Shown one piece after another: positions 3,284-42,483 of a stretch of DNA of 64,000 nucleotides. The stretch's first letter is position 1. Every line of letters begins with the position of its first letter. The position numbers and the translations under genes are program-made. Source of the stretch: Haliotis rubra (taxonomy: Eukaryota); the NCBI RefSeq assembly GCF_003918875.1, contig NW_025766965.1, forward strand, positions 620,001 to 684,000. Direction: 5' to 3'. The notes beneath the pieces were generated by a model. It did not search any database. It was not told the DNA's origin and saw nothing but the letters and a program-made list of their open reading frames with translations.

Positions 3284-3436
3284 TTTAGCATGTAGAATGT
3301 GGTTAGCAATTTATTGAGTTTGATTCTTTATAGACACGGAATATGATATTTTCTTAATATGTAAAGTAATGATTTATGAAATTGAGGTCTTAGGTGTAAA
3401 TGTTCAAATATTAAGTGATATATTTTTTGTTTCCAG

Positions 3437-4632
3437 ACGAAGGGTTCATATGCCCACAGTGTGGTGAAGTTTTCGAGTACGTGTTTCCAATGAGGGCTCA
3501 TCTCAAGTTCCGGTGTACTATGAGGGCGGCGGACATGCGCAGTTTAATTCATGATGCTTCCGCAAAACGACACCTAGTAATTTCAGAACTGAGATCCAAA
3601 GAGCGTGTTGCCTCGGACAATTATAAATGTGAAACAGATTTATTGAGAGACAGCATTCCAAACAGGTCCGGAGACAGTCCTGATTCAATTCCACTTGAAC
3701 TTTCACCAAGGAGAAAAGACATTTCAGAATCTAATAGTTCACGGAAACGACATTTATCTAGAGACATTTCTCCACCTGAGAAGAAAAGTTGTACTGAAAG
3801 TAAAAGTTCTGTGTCTTCGATGAACAAGGATATTGACGTTGAGCGATTATCTCCCCCTAGCACGAAACTCAATGACTTTGATCATCACTCTGACGGAGCA
3901 AGTGCATTTAGGAAAGTGGAAAAATCTATGTCACCAGTTCAAGAACAATTGTCACCAATTCACCCAGTCTCATCAAGTTCCGTGTCTCTGTCAAATAGAA
4001 TGTCTGTTCATAATGCTGTTCGAAACCCTAGTATGTCTATACCGTCATCAACTGCGTCACATCCGGCTGTGCGGGATGCTGTGCAGCAGAATCAGCTGCT
4101 TGGACTATATATGCCCCGTCTTCCATTGATGCCGCAGCTCCCCCTATCGACCAATCTGGCTGCTTCAACGACCATGTACGCCGAACGGGCACCTGTTCGT
4201 TTTGCTGAAATGTGTCGGACACAGGTGCCGGGGCCTCTGACAGAGAGCTTTGCCAACGTACGAAACAGTGACAGTAACAGCGAACTATTTGTCAAACAAC
4301 AACAGCTGCTGTTTGCGGAGAGGGCAAGCATGAGTTACCCCGCGTATTTGAAAAGCCAGAACCCGATGGTGGAAAAAATGATTCATAGTGGGACGAATCC
4401 CACTCAGATCAATTCCCCCGTAGCCGCAATGGACCTGTCACAGAACTGGTGCGCCAAGTGCAACGCCACCTTCCGGATGACTAGTGATCTCGTCTATCAC
4501 ATGAGATCTCATCACAAACGAGAGTTCGACCCGGTGAAGAAGAAGCGTGATGACAAGCTGCGGTGTAACATTTGTAGCGAGACTTTCCGAGAGCGGCACC
4601 ATTTGACGAGGCATATGACGTCACACGTATAG
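3437..4632 (+). CDS. PRDM8: PRDM8-like, coding exon 3 (C2HC finger, linker, two C-terminal C2H2 fingers); total about 520 aa
   Basis: tttccag|AC continues phase 1. CPQC...AHLKFRC and QNWCAKCNATFRMTSDLVYHMRSHH...CNICSETFRERHHLTRHMTSH are nearly identical to the vertebrate PRDM8 C-terminus as I recall it. Confidence 0.95.
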
Positions 4633-11199: not shown

Positions 11200-11536
11200 A
11201 CTGCTCCAACTTCTAAATGCCTCTCAAAGAAGTCTGTTCTCAGTATTGTTACAACTGTGATTGGGTGAGTGAGTTTAGTTTTACGCCGCATAATATCCTA
11301 GCTATATGGCGGCTGTTACAGCTGTACATGCAGTGGTCGTATACGTCGGCGGGAGGTCTTAGGTTCGATCCACTGGTTGTGTCATACCACAAACATGGTG
11401 CTGGCCAATAGCATTCGTCAGTAAGGAAATAAAGCATAGTCTGGCAGGCTCGAAACCAGTATAACATGTGTGAGTTGGGGGGTATGGTATACCTGTGGCC
11501 TTGCAGTATAAAACCGGCCAAAGTCCGAATAAGTAA

Positions 11537-11698
11537 GTGAGTGAGTATGGTTTTACGCCGCTTTTAGTTAATATTCCAGCAATATCACGGCGGGGCTTAC
11601 CAGAAATGGGCTTCCCATATTGTACCCATGTGGGGAATCGAACCAAGGTCTTCAGCGTGACTAGCGAACGCTTTAACCACTAGGCTACCCCACTGCCC
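11537..11698 (-). mobile_element. SINE family A
   Basis: Full-length match. Confidence 0.88.
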
Positions 11699-11879
11699 TT
11701 AAAGTATCGTGAAAAAAGAGTTGTTTGTTTTAATGAAAAGGTCGTTACACGTTTTTCATAAGTAGATAAGCAAGAACACGAACTGGATCACAATGACCAG
11801 GATTGTAGGTCAGTGAACGCGGACCTCAAGATAAGGTACAGCCTTCGTCACACGCTCGCGGAACTTGTGATCTGAGAGA

Positions 11880-11886
11880 TATAAAA
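11880..11886 (+). promoter_or_regulatory. TATA box of the GH49-like gene, with upstream AGATAAG (GATA) motifs
   Basis: TATAAAA starts 43 nt before the ATG. agataag occurs at about 11764 and 11829. AATAAA at about 13813 follows the stop. Confidence 0.5.
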
Positions 11887-11922
11887 AGTTTGTTTCATAA
11901 TCCGGTTGTATAACCGAGAGAC

Positions 11923-12813
11923 ATGGACGTCCGATCTCTCGTGTTGTTGCTTCATGTGGTGTGTTCCGATGTCATCATCTACCCTGCACCTGACGGGCTA
12001 GCACCTTCAGACAAATTCTCTGTCAATGTTACCCAATCTGGACAACCACCCAGCAGACTGTTTGTATATATCAGCACGTCCGACCACCGTAGCAGTTCAC
12101 CTCTTGAGCCCCCGGGGAGGAGCATGTCATGGACGTCGTTTGCCTTCACAGGCGCTCCCGTCACCATCGAGGTCCATGCTCCCAAAGACTTCAACAACTG
12201 CCTTGTTAGACCTACCAGCTATGGCTACAAGTGCAAGAGACTAGGTCCAAACAGAGCATCATTCACTGTTCTGCAAAATGCCCGGATGATGTCCGTGGAG
12301 TTTGACTACGACTACGGTCTTGGTGTCCGAGACATCACCGACAAACTCTTCGTCTTCGCCGACCCTCCAGAAGTAAACGTTCCATCCCCGACTGACCCAG
12401 GTGTACTGTTCTATGGACAAGGGATCCACAACTTCACCACATCACTGATAGTTGGTCCAGAGATTCGTCAGGTGTACATCGCACCTGGGGCGTACGTCAG
12501 GGGAGGGTTTCAACTGCCGCATGGAAACGTCACAATGCACGGCCGAGGCGTCATCTCCAACGAGAACTTCACCCGTCACGATGAAAGGATAGGCCAATGT
12601 GCAGTGAACTTCATGGAATCCTCCGGAAACGTTTACGAAGGAATAACGATCGCTGACCCATCTAAATTCTTCTTCCTCGCCAATGGTAATGACAACATCG
12701 TCCGTAACGCCCGCATGGTAGCTGCGTGGATGGGGAACACTGATGGTGTCGGGGTTGGAGTTGGCGGAGTGGTGGAGGACAGCTTCATTATAGCGGATGA
12801 TGCCAACATTAAG
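11923..12813 (+). CDS. Secreted GH49/dextranase-like (pectin-lyase-fold beta-helix) glycoside hydrolase, exon 1
   Basis: Signal peptide MDVRSLVLLLHVVCS. Motifs SWTSF, LFVFADP, FYGQGIH, VYIAPGAYVRG, GRGVIS, EGITI, WMGNTDG, DDANIK. Donor AAG|gtacaa, phase 0. Confidence 0.85.
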
Positions 12814-12836
12814 GTACAACAATACATAAAAAACAA

Positions 12837-12992
12837 GTGAGTGAGCATGGTGTTATGCCCCTTTAGCAATATTCCAGGAATATCATTGCAGGGGACACCA
12901 TGGGCTTTACAGGTTGTACTCATGTGGGAAATCGAAGCCAGGTCTTCGACGTAAATCGCGAACGCATTAACACTAGGCTAACAGACCGCCCC
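12837..12992 (-). mobile_element. SINE family A in the GH49-like intron
   Basis: Diverged full-length copy. Confidence 0.8.
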
Positions 12993-13224
12993 TAATAAAC
13001 AACAGGGCAATAGATGTATTGCATGAGGCGTTTGTTCTGTGAGGAGCCAATCCAGCAAACAATTTCCTTTTAGTATTCTTTAAGACATATTTGATTTTCA
13101 TTATTGTTGATGATACTAACATTAAGGTACCGTAAAAACCCAATATGCAACAGTTACTACCTTTCTGTTAGACAGATAATGCTTTGTCTTAAGTAGCCGA
13201 AGATTCAGGATATCCTTTTTTCAG

Positions 13225-13746
13225 ATCCACATGAGCAACTTGACGGTTCGACGATGTGTGCAGTGGCAGATGCAGAACGGAGGCACACTTCAGACAGGAT
13301 GGGAGACGTTGTATGTTCGCAACGTCACCATGGTCGACATGGACATCATCCACACCGACTGGTGCAAGTTCAAAAATGTTTGTAAAACTTTATCAGGAAA
13401 CGACGCCGTTTTTGACACGTATGGAAATACCCGCCATTTTGACGTCAGCGACATGCGCTTTGAAAACATCCGGGTGGAAGGGTCATGTCCAAGGGTTGTC
13501 AATTACAACATGGATCCCGCTGCGGAGGGGACCATCTCAAATATTACTGTTATCAATTTGTCAGTTGACTCTCAACCTGTCCACGACCCGATCCATAATG
13601 CTATCTCTGGTTCATCTCGTGGTGGACGGATAATCGACTGGCAGTTTGTGAACTTGACCATCGCCGGTCAGTGCATCGCCAGTGGATCTGATGGGGATTT
13701 TATCATTGACCCCAACACAACGAGTAACATCACATTTACGTGTTAA
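13225..13746 (+). CDS. GH49-like glycoside hydrolase, exon 2; total about 470 aa
   Basis: tttttttcag|ATC acceptor in phase 0. IHMSNLTV...WQMQNGGTLQTGW...FENIRVEG continues the beta-helix. Confidence 0.85.
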   Translation: MHMSNLTVRRCVQWQMQNGGTLQTGWETLYVRNVTMVDMDIIHTDWCKFKNVCKTLSGNDAVFDTYGNTRHFDVSDMRFENIRVEGSCPRVVNYNMDPAAEGTISNITVINLSVDSQPVHDPIHNAISGSSRGGRIIDWQFVNLTIAGQCIASGSDGDFIIDPNTTSNITFTC

Positions 13747-13854
13747 TGAGAGTTGTACAGATTACATTGTTCCGTGGTGTCTTTAGAAAAAATGTTTAAG
13801 CTCATGGTTTGAAATAAAATAATGTTTGAATTAACCCATGTTATGTTTGGGATT

Positions 13855-13995
13855 ACACTTTCTCAGTAAAGTACAGATTCTAGTACTTTTGTTGGATTGA
13901 CGACTATCCTGGATTCGAACCCACACCCTCAAAGACAGGCACCTAATCGCCAGCACACAAAGTCTGCCGTCTAACCCATTCAGCCACCGCGTATT
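13855..13995 (-). mobile_element. tRNA-derived SINE family C (related fragment at about 21392-21505)
   Basis: Minus strand reads gcggtggctgaatgggttaga...gtgggttcgaatcc. attaggtgcctg.ct.tgag is shared with 21424. Confidence 0.55.
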
Positions 13996-14160
13996 CCTCA
14001 CTAAGAAAGTGTAATTCCAAGTATAACATGTGTTACATTTGAGCACTTTCTAAATGGCATTGTGTATTCAATGTCTGATTTGATACTTACACAATATCTA
14101 GTCTAGTCTCCAATCACAATCCCCTCACAATACCCTTCCAAGAACATCCCATGGTAGGTC

Positions 14161-14865: not shown

Positions 14866-16376
14866 TATACTAAGCAGCAAAAGAAACGTCAGTTTGGAAT
14901 TTTCCTTCGCAGACACGGATGACTGTAAACTCATTTAATGTTTTGATTGACTGAATGTATATTTTTTGACAACTTTACCTGAGTAAAGACATTCCTTTCC
15001 AGGAACCCAGGAAATGGTCTCAAAAACGCAACCCGATCTCGGAGATGGTAGTGTTCTCCATGTTTTTCATGCAACTCATGCTGCATGTGCTGTTCACAAG
15101 GACCAACCCTATAAAATGCACCCCCAAGCCTGGTGGAAACATTCACATTACAACGTCAGCAGGATGCCACAAGTCACGACAAGCGCTAGGAAGACCTGAA
15201 GCTGGCCACACTGCACGAGCCGTTGCCAATCACTTCCAGGTCAACGTTAGGACCATCTACAGGGTGCATCAACGTTTCTGGGCCACCAACACCACAAATG
15301 ATCGCCCCCGTACTGGCAGGCAAAGGGTGACCACAAGGCGACAACACCGCCATGTTGTGCGACAGCATGTACAGAATCCCTACATGCAGGCATCCGAAAC
15401 AGCACGCCAGACAGTGGGAATACACGGAAGACCAATCAGCACTGATACAGTACGCCGACGTCTTAACAGCGGGAACCTCCATTGCCGTAGACCTTACCGC
15501 GCCTATCCTCACCCCTCGTCATTGGCGTGAACGTCTACAGTTTGCCCGACAACACCAAAACTGGCGATACAGGCAATGGAGAACTGTTCTGTTCACAGAT
15601 GAGAGTCGGTACTGCGTATCAAGTGCAGATGGCAGAACAAGAATATGGCGACGACGTGGCCAGCGTTACTCAGACCAGTGTGTTATGGAAAGAGACTCAT
15701 GGGGAGGTGCAAGCATCATGGTATGGGTTGGAATAGACCTGAACCAGAGAGTGGGTTCTGTGGTGTTCCAGAACCTTGGTCCAGGGAGAGGAGGCGTCAT
15801 CACAGCGGTGCGCTACATCGACCAAGCTCTCAGACCCCACGTCATACCACAATTCGCACGTCACCGGAACAACATTTTCCAGCACGATAACGCCCGGGCC
15901 CATACTGTCAGAGCTACACGGGACTTCCTACAGCACAAAGGTGTCAACATTATGCAGTGGCCAGTCCTTAGTCCTGATTTAAACCCAACTGAACATCTTT
16001 GGGATGAAATTCAGAGAAGACTGAATAATGTCATACCAAGGCCGAACACAGCCGATTTATTGCGCCAGGCCTTTCTCAGAGTGTGGTTCCAGGTGCCAAT
16101 GGCCTTCATCAATCGATTGGTGCACTCCATGCATAGACGCTGTGCTACAGTTATTGCTGCTCGTGGTGGTCACACTAGATACTGAAGTCAAGAGTCTGAA
16201 TGGACTGCAAACGTTCACGTAATGTCTTGGAATTGATGTGTCATTCATTGATGTGTCAGGATATTGTACACAAAAAATGTTCTTGATCCGCTTATTATGT
16301 CCATTTCTGAAATGATTTGATTACAGTGCCTATCTAATTTTGAATTCGTACTGACGTTTGTTTGCTGCTGAGTATA
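14866..16376 (+). mobile_element. Tc1-type DD34E transposon, family T1; frameshifted transposase pseudogene (about 15163-16185)
   Basis: TA-flanked TIRs tactaagcagcaaaagaaacgtcagt / actgacgtttg-tttgctgctgagta. HTH and FTDESR, HDNARAH, SPDLNPTEHLW, GGHTRY lie in different frames. Confidence 0.95.
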
Positions 16377-24762: not shown

Positions 24763-26298
24763 TATACTGAGTCAAAAAAGAAACTTCACATTCATTCTCC
24801 AGGGTACTGTAAAAGAACAAGAGATGATAAGATGGTAAAATTGTTATTATTTCATTGCTGAGATCTGTGTGATGTACTCGATACACTGACAGTGCCATAA
24901 TCAGTTCCATTAGGCTACACCGCCGTTCCAAAACATGGGTATACAGAATGTCAAGTCACAAGAATAAAAATGCGAAATTTCTCAGTTCAATATCGTGTAT
25001 GGCCGCCCCGCGCATTCACCACTGCCAAACACCGTCTCCTCATCGACTGCCTGATGTTTGTGAACACGTGGTTGGGGATTCTGCGCCATTGCTCTTACAA
25101 GGCAGCGCCAAGTTGCTGCAAAATCTGAGGTTGGTTCCTAAGACCACGAAGCCTTCTCCCAAGTGCATCCCAAACGTGCTCTATTGGATTAAGGTCAGGG
25201 GACCTCGATGGCCAGTCCATGACGTTGATTCCAGCGTTTTGAAGGAAATTTCGTGTCAACATCGCGGTATGCGGCCTAGCATTATCATGCTGGAACCGTA
25301 GACCTGGGCCATGAGCCGCCATGAAAGGAACGAGTTCAGGGCTGAGCACCTGGTCGCGGTAAGCAGCAGCTGTGAGGTTTCCACGGATGACCAGAAGTCG
25401 GGAACGGTTGTTCCCACAGAAAGCACCCCACACCATGCGACTTCCGCCCCCGAATCTGTCGACTTCCTGTACACAACATTGGGCGTTCACGACGTCGTCT
25501 CCAGACTCAATGCCTGCCGTCCGCGAATCTGAGGGTAAGCCTGGATTCATCGCTAAAGACGACTTGATTCCAGTCTCTCTGGGTCCATCGGAGGTGACGT
25601 TGGGCCCACAGCAGACGTTGACGTTGATGAAACGGCGTCAATATTGGCCCACGATATGGACGTCGAGAATGGAGATTGGCAGCCCGCAACCGATTTCGAA
25701 TGGTCTGTGAGGACAGTTGACCTCTAAACATCGCAGCCCTGGTTCATGTAGCCGGCAGAAATCTGTCACGTAGGTGACGTAGGACGATTTGACGGTCTTC
25801 TGCTCGTGACGTCACACGTGGACGACCCGACCTTGGGCGATCAGAAGTGGTGCCAGTTTGTTGTAGACGACCTCGCAAGTCATACACAGTACGACGGCTG
25901 CATCCCATTGCTCTTGCGACGTCAATAACTGATTTTCCCGCTTGCAACATGCCAACGGCACGTTCACGTGCACATTTGACAATCGTGGCATTTCAAGTCA
26001 AGTACCGTTAGAACTGTGGTTTAAAAAGTGTTTTTTCAATTCTTGAGGCCAATGCAAACACGTGCATATGAAGAAAACTTTGATGGGAAGATCACGTGAT
26101 CGACTGCATGTGCAAAACCTGATTTGGCACTAACGTCATTTGCACGACGAATGGATGGGTTTGAGTGGGTTTTGCTTACGTTTTTCTAGAGTCGAAAGAT
26201 AGGGATCCCATTTCGTATACATAGATGTATCATCAGAGAAAAATTATTCATTATTTTTCAAATTACATTTTGTGAAGTTTCTTTTTTGACTCAGTATA
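24763..26298 (-). mobile_element. Tc1-type DD34E transposon, family T2; disrupted transposase (about 25990-24986)
   Basis: Perfect TA-flanked TIRs tactgagtcaaaaaagaaacttcaca. FSDESR, HDNARPH, SPDLNPIEHVW and GGHTRY are split by stops and frameshifts. Confidence 0.95.
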
Positions 26299-38332: not shown

Positions 38333-39881
38333 TAAACTCATGTCCAAAAGAAACGATACCAAATATTGTTTTCAATATTTTTAAATGAATGATACTTTTT
38401 GGAGAGAAAACATATTTCTGTGTATCCCACGTTCCTAACCAAACGTATTCGATCGAAAAAAACCGGTAACATTTATTCACTTAAGAAGCAATCGCACGAA
38501 TACTCAAAATGACGTTAAGTCGTGTAGCACGAAATGCACGTGCAGATGAACTGTATAAAACCGCTGGTCCGACACGTTGTGCCCACAGCAGTAAAAAGCA
38601 CACAAAAGAAATGGCACGTTTGACAGCGATCGAGAGAGAAAGAGCCGTTGGAATGGTCCGACAGGGAGCATCACACGCCGCTGTAGCAAGAACGTTTGGA
38701 TGCGCGCGCATAACCGTTACCAGGTTAATGCAACGGTTGCGTCAAACAGGCCGAACAACAGACAGGCCGAGAAGCGGGAGACCCCGGGTGACCACGCCTA
38801 TTCAAGACAACCACATCCGGTTACTTCACCTAAGTAACCGCTTCGTTCCTGCGACGTTAACGGCGGTGACGGGACTGGGACACCGGATCAGTCGACAAAC
38901 CGTCTACATGAGACTGCAGGCACATGGTATCCGTGCATGTCGCCCCTACCGCGGAGTCTACCTGACACGTCAAAACAGAGTCAACCGATTGATATGGGCC
39001 AGGCGTGTTCGGCGGTGGCAACGTCGAAACTGGGCACGTGTCTTGTTTTCGGACGAAAGCCGGTTTTGCCTTTACAAGAACGATGGTCGGGAGCGAGTAT
39101 ACCGAAGAGTTCGTGAACGTTTGGCGCCGAACTGCATCCAGCAAGTCCATGCATTTGGAGGCGGGGGTGTAATGGTGTGGGGAGGTATCTGCGGTGATGT
39201 GAAAACGAGGCTCGTCATTATTCGGGGGAACCTGAATGCACAGCGTTACCAGGATGAGGTTTTACGACCAGTCGTGCAGCCATTCGCCCAACAGCATCCA
39301 GGAGGAATCGTGTTCAAGCACGATAACGCTAGGCCTCATACGGCAAGATTGACCCAGAACTTCCTTGCCAACGCCAACATACAGGTTTTGCCATGGCCAG
39401 CGTGTTCACCGGATTTGAATCCCATTGAGCACATATGGGATCACCTCAATTGGAAAATCAGTAAACGCCCTGCGCCCCCAGCCAACCTCCAACAATTGGA
39501 ACATTGTCTCCAGGATGATTGGCAGCGAATCACCCCTAACGTCATCCGACGTTTGACGTCATCAGCTTGGAGGCGTGTCAAGGCATGTATCGCAGCTGCT
39601 GGTGGACATACCCGGTACTAAAGTGGCGTTAAGACTGTTTTCAGAGACTACCCTCACTAGCCTCCTCCACTGTGCTAAAATGAAATTTCAATTTTGGGCA
39701 CCACAGTTCGTTTAAAGCCCTGTGTTAATGATTGTAAATCTTTGATTGCCATGACTTTGTGTACACATGCCGTAAAATCATTTATCTAATGAAAGATATC
39801 AATTTGAAATGGCTATGTTGTTTTGTTTTAAGTTAGTGATCTTTGAAACACGTGGTATCGTTTCTTTTGGACACTAGTTTA
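38333..39881 (+). mobile_element. Tc1-type transposon, family T3, full length
   Basis: TIRs taaactcatgtccaaaagaaacgatacca / tggtatcgtttcttttggacactagttta (2 mismatches). Confidence 0.95.
38611..39621 (+). CDS. Tc1 DD34E transposase, uninterrupted 336-aa ORF
   Basis: Starts MARLTAIERERAVGM. GRPRVTT linker, FSDESRF, and HDNARPH...SPDLNPIEHIW with 34 residues between D and E. Confidence 0.92.
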   Translation: MARLTAIERERAVGMVRQGASHAAVARTFGCARITVTRLMQRLRQTGRTTDRPRSGRPRVTTPIQDNHIRLLHLSNRFVPATLTAVTGLGHRISRQTVYMRLQAHGIRACRPYRGVYLTRQNRVNRLIWARRVRRWQRRNWARVLFSDESRFCLYKNDGRERVYRRVRERLAPNCIQQVHAFGGGGVMVWGGICGDVKTRLVIIRGNLNAQRYQDEVLRPVVQPFAQQHPGGIVFKHDNARPHTARLTQNFLANANIQVLPWPACSPDLNPIEHIWDHLNWKISKRPAPPANLQQLEHCLQDDWQRITPNVIRRLTSSAWRRVKACIAAAGGHTRY

Positions 39882-40975: not shown

Positions 40976-42483
40976 TATACTAAGCAGCAAAAGAAACGTC
41001 AGTTAGGAATTTTCCTTCGCAGAAACGGATAACTGTAAACTCATTTGATGTTTTGATTGTATATTTTTGACAACATCTCCAACTTTACCTGAGCAAAGAC
41101 ATTCCTTCCCAAACTCAGAATGGAACCCAGGAAATGGTCTCAAAAACGCAACCTGATCTCGGAGATGGTACGGTGTTCTCCATGTTTTTCATGCAACTCA
41201 TGCTGCACGTGCTGTTCACAAGGACCAGCCCTATAAAATGCACCCCAAACCTGGTTGAAACATTCACATTACAACGTCAGCAGGATTCCGCGACTCACGA
41301 CATTTCAGAGGAACCAGGCGTTAGGAAGACTTGAAGCTGGCCACACTGCACAAGCCGTTGCCAATCACTTCCAGGTCAACGTTAGGACCATCTACAGGCT
41401 GCAGCAACGTTTCTGGGCCACCAACACCACAAATGATCGCCCCCGTACTGGCAGACCAAGGGTGACCACAAGGCGACAACACCGCCATGTTGTGCGACAG
41501 CATGTACAGAATCCCTTCATGCAGGCATCCGAAACAGCACGCCAGACAGTGGGAAACAGCACTGATACAGTACGCCGACGTCTTAACAGCGGGAACCTCC
41601 ATTGCTGTAGACCTTACCGTGGACCTATCCACACCCCTCGTCATCGGCGTGAACGTCTACAGTTTGCCCTACAACACCAAAACTGGCGATACAGGCAATG
41701 GAGAACTGTTCTGTTCACAGATGAGAGTCGGTACTGCGTATCAACTCCAGATGGCAGAACAAGGATATGGCGACGACGTGGCCAGCGTTAGCGTGGCCAT
41801 GTGTTATGGAAAGAGACGCATGGGGAGGTGCAAGCATCATGGTATGGGGTGGAATAGGCCTGAACCAGAGAGTGGGTCCTGTGGTGTTCCAGAACCTTGG
41901 TCCAGGGAGAGGAGGCGGCATCACAGCGGTGCGCTACATCGACCAAGCTCTCAGACCCCACGTCATACCACATTTCGCACGTCACCGGAACAACATTTTC
42001 CAGCATGATAACGCCGGGTCCCATACTGCCAGAGCTACACGGGATTTCCTACAGCAGAACGGTGTCAACATTATGCAGTGGCCGGCCTTTAGTCCTGATT
42101 TAAACCCAATTGAACATCCTTGGGATGAAATTCAAAGGAGACTGAATAATGTCATACCAAGGCCGAACACAGCCGATTTATTGCGCCAGGCCTTTCTCAG
42201 AGTGTGGTTCAAGGTGCCAATGGCCTTCATCAATCGATTGGTGCACTCCATGCATAGACGCTGTTCTGCAGTTATTGCCGGTCGTGGTGGTCACACTAGA
42301 TATTGAAGTCAAGGGTCTGAGTGGACTGCAAACGTTCACGTAATGCCTTGAAATTGTGCTGAGTTATTCATTGATGTCTCAAGATATTGTACACAACAAT
42401 CCGCTTATAATGTCCATTTCTGCAATGATTTGATTACAGTGCCTATCATTCGTACTGACGGGTTTTTTTGGCTGCTGAGGATA
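40976..42483 (+). mobile_element. Tc1 family T1, second copy with frameshifted transposase; inserted antisense into a host coding exon
   Basis: Same TIR and body as 14866-16376. The right TIR has decayed. Confidence 0.95.

Follow-up and report, generated by a model that had tools for sequence, protein, structure and literature searches.

The 64-kb window, i.e., the whole stretch of Haliotis rubra DNA analysed here, contains a two-exon gene on the + strand with a 470-aa product. At a probability of about 0.6 for the reading as a whole, this locus is best explained as a functional gene of abalone that encodes a secreted protein with the GH49 fold, belongs to a family acquired from a microbe in ancient times, and represents a paralogue with an altered, ADDA-type motif. 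The enzymes of GH49 cut sugars and are otherwise known in microbes, and the mollusc family is known in databases only under automatic 'dextranase-like' names. In the literature, no paper joining GH49 and molluscs was found, nor anything relevant on dextranase in abalone or polygalacturonase in Pomacea, and the main text of a metazoan HGT compendium mentions neither dextranase nor GH49 nor Haliotis. Algae and biofilms are eaten in large amounts by grazing molluscs, and farmed abalones are fed seaweed. If our reading is true, it adds endogenous multi-copy GH49-like glycanases to the known digestive CAZymes of molluscs, and this would be the first family of the GH49 fold characterised in Mollusca.

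Gene structure and conservation of the locus

Exon 1 (11923-12813, + strand; codons 1-297) encodes a putative signal peptide, the N-terminal beta-sandwich, and the start of the beta-helix, and stops right after the Lys residue of the catalytic motif, with the donor GT at 12814. Exon 2 (13225-13746, + strand; codons 298-470 plus TAA, i.e., 173 codons and the stop) encodes the remaining beta-helix. The exons are separated by a 411-nt phase-0 GT-AG intron (12814-13224, + strand), the 3' end of which is composed of a polypyrimidine tract plus CAG. A candidate TATA box, TATAAA (11880-11885, + strand), is located 43 nt 5' of the ATG and is the sole occurrence of this sequence in 11700-11923 (expectation, 0.06 per 100 bp). 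A candidate polyadenylation signal, AATAAA (13813-13818, + strand), is found 67 nt past the stop codon (expectation, 0.08 per 100 bp). The initial annotation had also counted GATA motifs among the regulatory signals. The TATAAA and AATAAA sequences each have a low chance expectation, but the two GATA motifs (at 11764 and 11829) compare with 0.78 expected there, which is not above chance, and they were discarded as regulatory evidence.

The intron harbors a copy of a tRNA-derived SINE (12828-12995, + strand; repeat families D1, D2, D4, and D5), which is approximately 80% identical to the full copy at 11528-11702. The depth of the intronic SINE in DNA runs was about 1e5, compared with about 14 for its flanks, and a degraded SINE remnant is present in the orthologous intron of H. 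asinina. In addition, there is a 34-nt near-copy of the end of exon 1 and the GT donor in the intron (13097-13130, + strand; 29/34 match; repeat family D3), of which no recognisable counterpart was observed in the H. asinina intron. Host transposons are found on both sides of the GH49-like gene. A tblastn search of the 64-kb window with 72 family proteins matched this gene alone and yielded no second copy. Upstream of it lies a C2H2 zinc-finger exon (3415-4632, + strand), which is collinear with the H. asinina locus, where both a PR domain and zinc fingers are encoded. The upstream gene is therefore of the PRDM type and may be the PRDM8 named in the initial annotation.

The H. asinina orthologue, a 470-aa RefSeq 'uncharacterized protein', shows 90.4% identity with the product from end to end with zero gaps, which bears out the previously proposed 470-aa reading frame interrupted by one GT-AG intron with a host SINE. 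Exons 1 and 2 are 90.3% and 92.9% identical to those of H. asinina, respectively, both ungapped, and the introns share 63% identity with many gaps. The dN/dS value against H. asinina was 0.16-0.21; purifying selection acts on the abalone gene. Collinearity between the window and H. asinina extends over approximately 22 kb. In a related species, an RNA-like contig (X1 record 1), from a run whose RNA status is the guess of the tool, is spliced at the predicted junction (12811/13223). The same gene was also found in DNA runs from two other organisms. These results identify the locus as a genuine gene that is spliced and is conserved among abalones.

The microbial affinities of the GH49-like family are the sole point in favor of a contamination of the assembly or a mis-assembled microbial fragment, the probability of which is negligible. 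This explanation is refuted by the spliceosomal intron with its host SINE, the host transposons flanking the gene, the 22-kb collinearity including the PRDM gene, the independent DNA runs of two other organisms, and the homologues on chromosome-scale scaffolds in six genera. On this evidence the gene is physically integrated in the host genome. Its expression in the recipient is suggested by the RNA-like contig of the related species, and selection is seen in the dN/dS value.

GH49 fold and the altered catalytic motif

Read by eye, the N-terminus of the product appears as a signal peptide, as the initial annotation had it; the putative peptide MDVRSLVLLLHVVCS (11923-11967, + strand) would be cut off directly before the residues DV. 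The protein has 11 N-x-S/T sequons and conserved cysteines, and together with the N-terminus these features point to secretion.

The exon 1 sequence used singly matched 6nzs with an E value of 3e-11 and isopullulanase with one of 3e-9. When a profile of 13 mollusc proteins was compared with the solved structures, all those of GH49 were matched, from 6nzs (1.5e-42) through isopullulanase (4e-38) to Dex49A (7e-32), and nothing besides GH49 was found under E 0.01. With the Pfam GH49 set (Glyco_hydro_49N, Glyco_hydro_49, and IPU_b_solenoid), the window exons remained under the gathering scores, at 16.4 vs 21.3 bits for PF17433, 18.6 vs 27 bits for PF03718, and 18.1 vs 30.2 bits for PF18783. Among 58 relatives, PF18783, PF17433, and PF03718 were detected at E<=0.01 in 24, 15, and 5 sequences, respectively. 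These sub-threshold scores are a sensitivity limit and do not contradict the assignment to GH49. A NCBIfam scan of both exons gave zero matches.

An AF2 model of an orthologue with 90% identity (P0001) was all-beta, with a pLDDT of 94.2 and a pTM of 0.93, and low pLDDT was confined to the first 10 or so residues. In a Foldseek search of the PDB with this model, the best seven matches were all GH49 enzymes, aligned at full length with E values of about 1e-21 and TMq values of 0.75-0.80, and GH28 came next at 1e-7. The modelled fold is that of GH49, in which an N-terminal beta-sandwich precedes a right-handed parallel beta-helix. The profile and fold, taken with the intron, collinearity, selection, and the spliced transcript in a relative, uphold the earlier view of a secreted-type GH49-like protein from a genuine animal gene. 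The protein shares this two-domain architecture with Dex49A of Penicillium minioluteum (1ogm), AoDex of Arthrobacter oxydans (6nzs), and isopullulanase of Aspergillus niger (1wmr/3wwg). Like them, it is predicted to be secreted and glycosylated, whereas its identity with them is 19-22% and it is shorter by about 100 residues.

The catalytic Asp residues of Dex49A are D376, D395, and D396. In the window protein, the N272-T-D274-G motif (12736-12747, + strand) contains D274, which corresponds to Asp376 of Dex49A and Asp353 of isopullulanase and is invariant across the 58-sequence alignment A3. The sequence A291-D-D-A-N-I-K297 (12793-12813, + strand) is a variant of the family motif ANDDxxK, in which D293 corresponds to Asp395 of Dex49A and A294 replaces Asp396. 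The spacing between D274 and D293 is 19 residues, the same as that between D376 and D395. Two of the three catalytic Asp residues that characterize the family are thus retained in the window protein, and the dextranase-like motif order proposed earlier applies to the family as a whole but fails at the last catalytic Asp of this member. Furthermore, classical GH49 enzymes carry a Glu residue three positions past the TDG Asp, where the window protein has Gly.

The ADDA variant is confined to a five-member Haliotis subclade consisting of the window protein and its four closest Haliotis relatives, which stands on a long stem (0.28 + 0.28). Its members carry Ala at the second position of the pair, and the Asn that precedes the pair has become Asp. 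The mollusc paralogues outside the subclade all show NDD, GDD, or DDD, and the second position of the pair is Asp in nearly all remaining rows of the alignment. The activity of the subclade is uncertain because ADDA stands where the near-universal catalytic NDD is expected. Judging from these residues, catalysis by the window paralogue is probably altered or weakened, or else its specificity has shifted, yet it is under purifying selection.

It is also conceivable, albeit unlikely, that the subclade has turned into a pseudoenzyme, a secreted protein that binds carbohydrate or has a structural role but is no longer a glycosidase. The replacement of the second catalytic Asp by Ala in 5/5 members, where the other mollusc paralogues have Asp, would agree with such a loss, as would the long stem and the Gly residue past the TDG Asp. 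However, two of the catalytic residues, the TDG Asp and the leading Asp of the pair, are kept, and the new Asp directly ahead of the pair could compensate for the lost residue or mark a one-residue register shift. Moreover, the variant motif is kept in three paralogue lineages and several species; together with the dN/dS of about 0.2, this indicates continued constraint on the site. An altered enzyme under selection is the reading that we retain.

Distribution and origin of the mollusc family

The family was found in Haliotis, Patella, Littorina, Pomacea, Batillaria, and the bivalve Pinctada, in all cases on chromosome-scale scaffolds, and its range spans three gastropod subclasses and one bivalve. 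It is multi-copy, with at least seven paralogues in Haliotis. In the phylogenetic trees, the molluscs were monophyletic at 100/100, and Pinctada was placed inside a gastropod orthologue group. The position and phase of the intron are identical in Haliotis, Patella vulgata, and Pinctada imbricata. Because the intron position is common to these three, the gene predates the gastropod-bivalve split, and a family this old, with members in snails, limpets, and a pearl oyster, was not acquired recently. The domestication that the initial annotation had placed in the abalone genome is not supported as a lineage-specific event, since the window gene belongs, as a single paralogue, to an ancient family. 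The common intron makes this a datable case of a microbial-type enzyme fixed before that split.

When 1.84 billion representatives were searched exhaustively with HMMER, the molluscs were followed by protist and then by bacterial sequences. This search carries no organism names; in the searches that do, the animal-named matches were exclusively molluscs. Several close relatives are unlabelled Logan or ENA contigs, which could include other animals. These contigs are mostly single-ORF and transcript-sized. Through their clusters, three of the close relatives received names, all from EukProt, and a feature-based search of the ESM Atlas yielded only broad taxa. A search seeded with the protist clade returned zero named animals and zero named genome proteins. 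A high-scoring sequence from an NCBI assembly of eukaryotic size, P0073, was considered as a further eukaryotic relative and was rejected as bacterial-like based on the 62% GC content of its contig, a neighbouring aminoacyl-tRNA synthetase gene, its fusion with GH43, and its place in a bacterial clade.

The molluscs fell into a 98/99 clade with the choanoflagellate Salpingoeca urceolata, the diplonemid Artemidia motanka, and unlabelled eukaryote-like sequences. Together with bacterial groups, this eukaryotic clade forms a trichotomy that the trees do not resolve. In these trees, which were constructed without fungal sequences, the mollusc clade was not nested in the sampled bacteria, and no supported nesting in a donor clade was observed. 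In the free ML tree, the choanoflagellate group was sister to the molluscs (83/84). On the other hand, an alternative tree keeping all 14 protist-clade rows together had a lnL higher by 6.6 units (AU p = 0.68), and the sister pairing was therefore not upheld by the AU test as evidence of vertical descent. Since the branch order inside the eukaryotic clade is unsettled, horizontal acquisition is plausible but not demonstrated, and no donor can be named because the mollusc family groups with protists. The tie of molluscs to choanoflagellate and diplonemid sequences makes transfer and ancestral retention distinguishable with better sampling.

The same trees bear on a vertical inheritance, by which the family would have been present in the choanoflagellate-animal ancestor or earlier, kept by molluscs, and lost from virtually every other animal lineage sampled. 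The robust clade containing eukaryotes, its position outside each of the sampled bacterial groups, the choanoflagellate-mollusc pairing of the free ML tree, which vertical descent predicts, and the age of the family within molluscs with its common intron all speak for it. However, many independent metazoan losses would be needed, as every animal-named match is a mollusc; the tree that breaks the pairing scores better; and a diplonemid (Discoba) in the same clade fits simple descent poorly, in addition to which the protist distribution is itself patchy. We regard this inheritance as doubtful, though worth serious consideration. A broad distribution including unicellular relatives, which the initial annotation had held to be incompatible with its proposal, is touched on by the choanoflagellate, but molluscs stand alone among named animals. 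The acquisition proposed there keeps its support from the mollusc-only matches among named animals, but the nearest relatives of the mollusc clade turned out to be marine protists, and nesting in a donor clade was not observed.

Ancient horizontal acquisition remains the most parsimonious origin. A single acquisition from a microbe would have occurred in the mollusc stem lineage, most likely from a marine microbial eukaryote or from a bacterium near the PVC/Bacteroidota 'distant GH49' group. Tandem duplication would have followed, and the phase-0 intron after ANDDxxK would have been in place before gastropods and bivalves diverged. The whitefly Bemisia tabaci is reported to carry a GH49 gene of fungal origin, which is single and recent (PMC11800479). 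In both cases, the nuclear genome of an animal encodes a microbial-type glycoside hydrolase that has introns and lies in a host regulatory context, whereas the mollusc family is ancient and multi-copy, occurs in gastropods and a bivalve, and groups with protists.

Probable function and substrate

The product is probably a secreted, N-glycosylated two-domain protein, and the family would consist of inverting endo-glycanases that work outside the cell and probably serve digestion. If the mechanism is like that of Dex49A and isopullulanase, the general acid could be one Asp of the (N)DD pair, with the TDG Asp helping in the activation of water. As the substrate, a polysaccharide from algae or microbes would be expected, which need not be dextran. 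Digestion of algal or biofilm glycans is a reasonable suggestion in view of what the carrier species feed on and of the expansion in copy number.

A true dextranase or isopullulanase, cutting the alpha-1,6-glucans of bacterial biofilms, is improbable. The best matches among solved structures are dextranases and isopullulanase, and RefSeq paralogues bear the names 'dextranase-like' and 'isopullulanase-like', but these names are automatic. Against the characterised dextranases and isopullulanase, the mollusc profile reached no more than 114-149 bits, compared with approximately 280 bits for P0036 and 243-324 bits for most of the distant bacterial homologues scored. Several bacterial relatives are fused to GH43. 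A homologue from Bacteroides (Phocaeicola) plebeius DSM 17135 (L045) reached 283 bits, approximately twice the score of the characterised dextranases. Two 'GH49_dist' proteins of this strain are endo-acting hydrolases of green-algal sulfated arabinan and do not cleave dextran (Helbert et al. 2019, PMC6442616); L045 may or may not be one of the two.

A rather unlikely but broader proposal is that the enzymes of molluscs, the choanoflagellate, the diplonemid, and other marine protists form a distinct, undescribed eukaryotic GH49 subfamily with its own substrate, e.g., a sulfated algal or bacterial exopolysaccharide. Such a subfamily might have been kept from a pre-metazoan ancestor or taken from protist prey, and the abalone ADDA subclade might then have a rebuilt catalytic centre with a new activity.

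For the preferred reading, an acquired glycanase acting on algal or microbial polysaccharides, the DSM 17135 proteins offer a parallel. L045 is 457 aa long, similar to the window protein, with which it shares 28% identity, and like the mollusc family it lies on a distant branch that is poorly recognised by the Pfam GH49 models. Within the trichotomy, the bacterial group branches separately from the eukaryotic clade, and the marine or algal glycan context of the bacterial enzymes suits grazers.

Gene model and locus of the window gene

The GH49-like gene of the abalone (Haliotis) genome was modelled on the + strand as two exons (11923–13746), namely exon 1 (11923–12813, 297 codons) and exon 2 (13225–13746, 173 codons plus TAA), separated by a 411-nt phase-0 intron with GT/AG ends (12814–13224). 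The 470-aa product aligned over its full length and without gaps with a 470-aa RefSeq 'uncharacterized protein' of H. asinina (90.4% identity). The gene for this orthologue lies in a collinear locus; approximately 22 kb of the window, including a PRDM-type zinc-finger gene upstream of the window gene, match the scaffold in order. Between the two species, the exons were 90–93% identical and ungapped, the intron was 63% identical with 118 gapped columns, and dN/dS was 0.16 (NG86) or 0.21 (YN00). Furthermore, a 630-nt contig of a related species (X1 record 1; 92–95% identity), from a run whose RNA status was a guess by the tool, joins 12811 to 13223, which is the predicted exon junction within a 2-nt 'AG' ambiguity. 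It therefore appears that the orthologue is transcribed and spliced as modelled. These results bear out the two-exon, 470-aa gene with a SINE-containing GT-AG intron described in the initial annotation. Of the promoter and 3' signals reported there, a candidate TATA box (TATAAA, 11880, +) and a candidate polyA signal (AATAAA, 13813, +) are sensibly placed relative to the gene, but the two nearby GATA motifs are no more frequent than expected by chance. The protein begins with a putative short signal peptide, as read from the sequence; conserved cysteines and 11 N-glycosylation sequons are also present. The DNA showed no runs of N and nothing resembling human sequence.

Fold, catalytic centre and substrate

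The window exons were searched separately, P0001 (the 90%-identical H. asinina orthologue) stood in for the profile, model and tree queries, and local scripts worked on the window protein itself. In Pfam, the window sequence alone gave weak matches below the gathering scores to Glyco_hydro_49N, Glyco_hydro_49 and IPU_b_solenoid; its direct matches to GH49 structures were 6nzs (3e-11) and isopullulanase (3e-9). A profile of 13 mollusc homologues matched only GH49 among all PDB sequences (AoDex, 1.5e-42; isopullulanase, 4e-38; Dex49A, 7e-32). The AlphaFold2 model of the H. asinina orthologue had a pLDDT of 94.2, and its first seven Foldseek matches in the PDB were all GH49 (E~1e-21, TMq 0.75–0.80), followed by GH28 at 1e-7. 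Taken together, the profile matches and the model indicate that the window protein has the two-domain GH49 architecture.

We take the catalytic residues to be D376/D395/D396 in Dex49A and D353/D372/D373 in isopullulanase. In a 58-sequence alignment of molluscs, protists and bacteria, the Asp of the TDG motif was invariant and an (N)DD pair 19 and 20 residues downstream of it was nearly universal; this spacing equals that of Dex49A and isopullulanase, as verified in the profile alignment. The window protein keeps D274 and D293 and has D292 in place of Asn, but differs from these enzymes at the third Asp (D396/D373), where it has Ala (A294), giving the motif ADDANIK. Each of the five members of a single Haliotis-specific subclade carries this variant, which no other aligned sequence has. 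It is thus conserved in this subclade, and such a rebuilt catalytic motif is an unusual aspect of the gene.

The mollusc profile scored 114–149 bits against the characterised dextranases and isopullulanase, the most distant members, and 283 bits against a homologue of Phocaeicola plebeius DSM 17135 (L045, 457 aa; NZ_DS990119.1, 2926–4299). Helbert et al. (PMC6442616) demonstrated endo-acting hydrolysis of green-algal sulfated arabinan for two 'GH49_dist' proteins of this strain, of which L045 may be one. The Phocaeicola bacterial group and the eukaryotic clade form separate arms in the tree. The automatic 'dextranase' label is untrustworthy as a guide to the substrate. A digestive glycanase role of the mollusc family would fit the feeding of the carrier species, which graze, take up deposits or filter-feed, as well as the multi-copy genes and the secreted appearance of the proteins.

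Distribution and origin of the mollusc family

Word-based searches found homologues, all on chromosome-scale scaffolds, in several Haliotis species (at least seven paralogue lineages), Patella vulgata, P. caerulea, Littorina saxatilis, Pomacea canaliculata, Batillaria attramentaria and the bivalve Pinctada imbricata; some are labelled 'dextranase-like' or 'isopullulanase-like' in RefSeq. The molluscs were monophyletic (100/100), and the window gene is a member of a fast-evolving, abalone-only branch. A phase-0 intron after the Lys codon of ANDDxxK, as in the window gene, is present in P. vulgata (two tandem copies; right after the codon) and P. imbricata (tandem array, four introns per copy), and Pinctada falls within an orthologue group that also contains Haliotis, Patella and caenogastropod genes. 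Therefore, the gene with its intron predates the gastropod–bivalve split.

The P. vulgata copies (L008, OW026355.2, 10001–12135 and 17970–20840) have two exons each, are ~85% identical and share the Haliotis intron position. The Pinctada array (L007, VSWD01000014.1, 10001–38730) holds at least two and a fraction GH49-like copies with four introns per copy, and an in-frame stop interrupts copy 2 in its last exon. One annotated Pinctada protein (P0025, 776 aa) joins exons of neighbouring copies; in a second one, P0030, a GH49-like piece is combined with a C1q domain. To judge from the numbering of their locus tags, P. caerulea and Pomacea may have similar clusters.

CAZymes derived by horizontal transfer are well known in animals, and a fungus-derived GH49 has been reported from whitefly (PMC11800479). 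No paper on GH49 in molluscs was found, and the window gene is undescribed but auto-annotated. A HMMER search with the mollusc profile against all 1.84 billion cluster representatives gave 3747 hits. Next after the molluscs came a small set of full-length sequences (~300–400 bits), three of them named: Salpingoeca urceolata (choanoflagellate), another EukProt transcript with a name of the same style, and Artemidia motanka (diplonemid). Another close relative lies on an 18.5-kb eukaryote-like contig beside zf-AN1, TMEM220 and split eIF2D genes, and a further one has an EF-hand neighbour. A search seeded with the protist clade returned no named genome-encoded relatives. Bacterial homologues (~250–300 bits), several fused to GH43, were mostly from Verrucomicrobiota, Planctomycetota, Lentisphaerota and Bacteroidota.

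The phylogeny proposed in the initial annotation was run against bacterial and protist homologues, with no fungal sequences (IQ-TREE, LG+C20 PMSF, 78 rows). Molluscs and 14 protist-type rows formed one clade (98/99), which was one arm of a trichotomy with the bacterial groups. Such a seemingly eukaryote-specific GH49 clade, in which molluscs stand together with sequences from a choanoflagellate and a diplonemid, is unusual. The free tree paired the molluscs with the choanoflagellate group (83/84), as vertical descent or retention from a holozoan ancestor would have it; a tree holding all protist rows together had a likelihood 6.6 units higher (AU p = 0.68), and the branch order inside the clade is therefore tentative. 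Such retention, which we consider rather unlikely, needs many losses, and one ancient gain is more parsimonious. We favour an ancient transfer as the origin of the mollusc family, with a probability of about 0.6. The horizontal acquisition first suggested thus holds in part: the family is of a microbial type and, as far as animal sequences carry names, occurs in molluscs alone, but these fungus-free trees do not place it within the sampled bacterial GH49, and it has no nameable donor.

Among the loci carrying homologues, L001 (GCA_013565735.1, JACCDR010413465.1) encodes a 1281-aa protein that combines two GH49-like modules with a GH43 domain; its 5.5-kb contig (62% GC), with an adjacent class II aminoacyl-tRNA synthetase gene, looks like a bacterial sequence inside a highly fragmented assembly. 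The start of L004 (Logan SRR28720659 contig, 1–20; …AGATGTGTATAAGAGACAG) is presumably a Nextera transposase adaptor remnant, in which case this 5' end would stem from the library rather than from the organism.

Repeats in and near the window gene

The intron holds a tRNA-derived SINE (12828–12995, +) that is ~80% identical to a full copy at 11528–11702 and extremely abundant in DNA runs. The insertion is old, because the H. asinina intron holds its decayed remnant. Beyond the SINE, 13097–13130 is a 34-nt near-copy (29/34) of 12784–12817, which covers the final 30 nt of exon 1 and the first 4 nt of the intron with the GT donor. This near-copy could not be discerned in the H. asinina intron; it may be a scar left by repair or duplication when the SINE inserted, or it may represent a cryptic donor.

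At 15045–16185, 1.3 kb downstream of the gene, is a Tc1/mariner transposase that spans two overlapping frames (HTH_Tnp_Tc3_2 and DDE_3); the collinear H. asinina locus lacks this stretch, which marks the insertion as lineage-specific. Further Tc1-like ORFs are found at 38509–39621 (370 aa, uninterrupted), 25095–25550 and 41255–42306. The candidate polyA signal is immediately followed by a tRNA-like stretch between 36-nt inverted-repeat arms that are 86% complementary (13832–14035). Its depth in DNA runs is ~1e6, compared with ~15–35 for the window gene, so the element is a very high-copy SINE or MITE.
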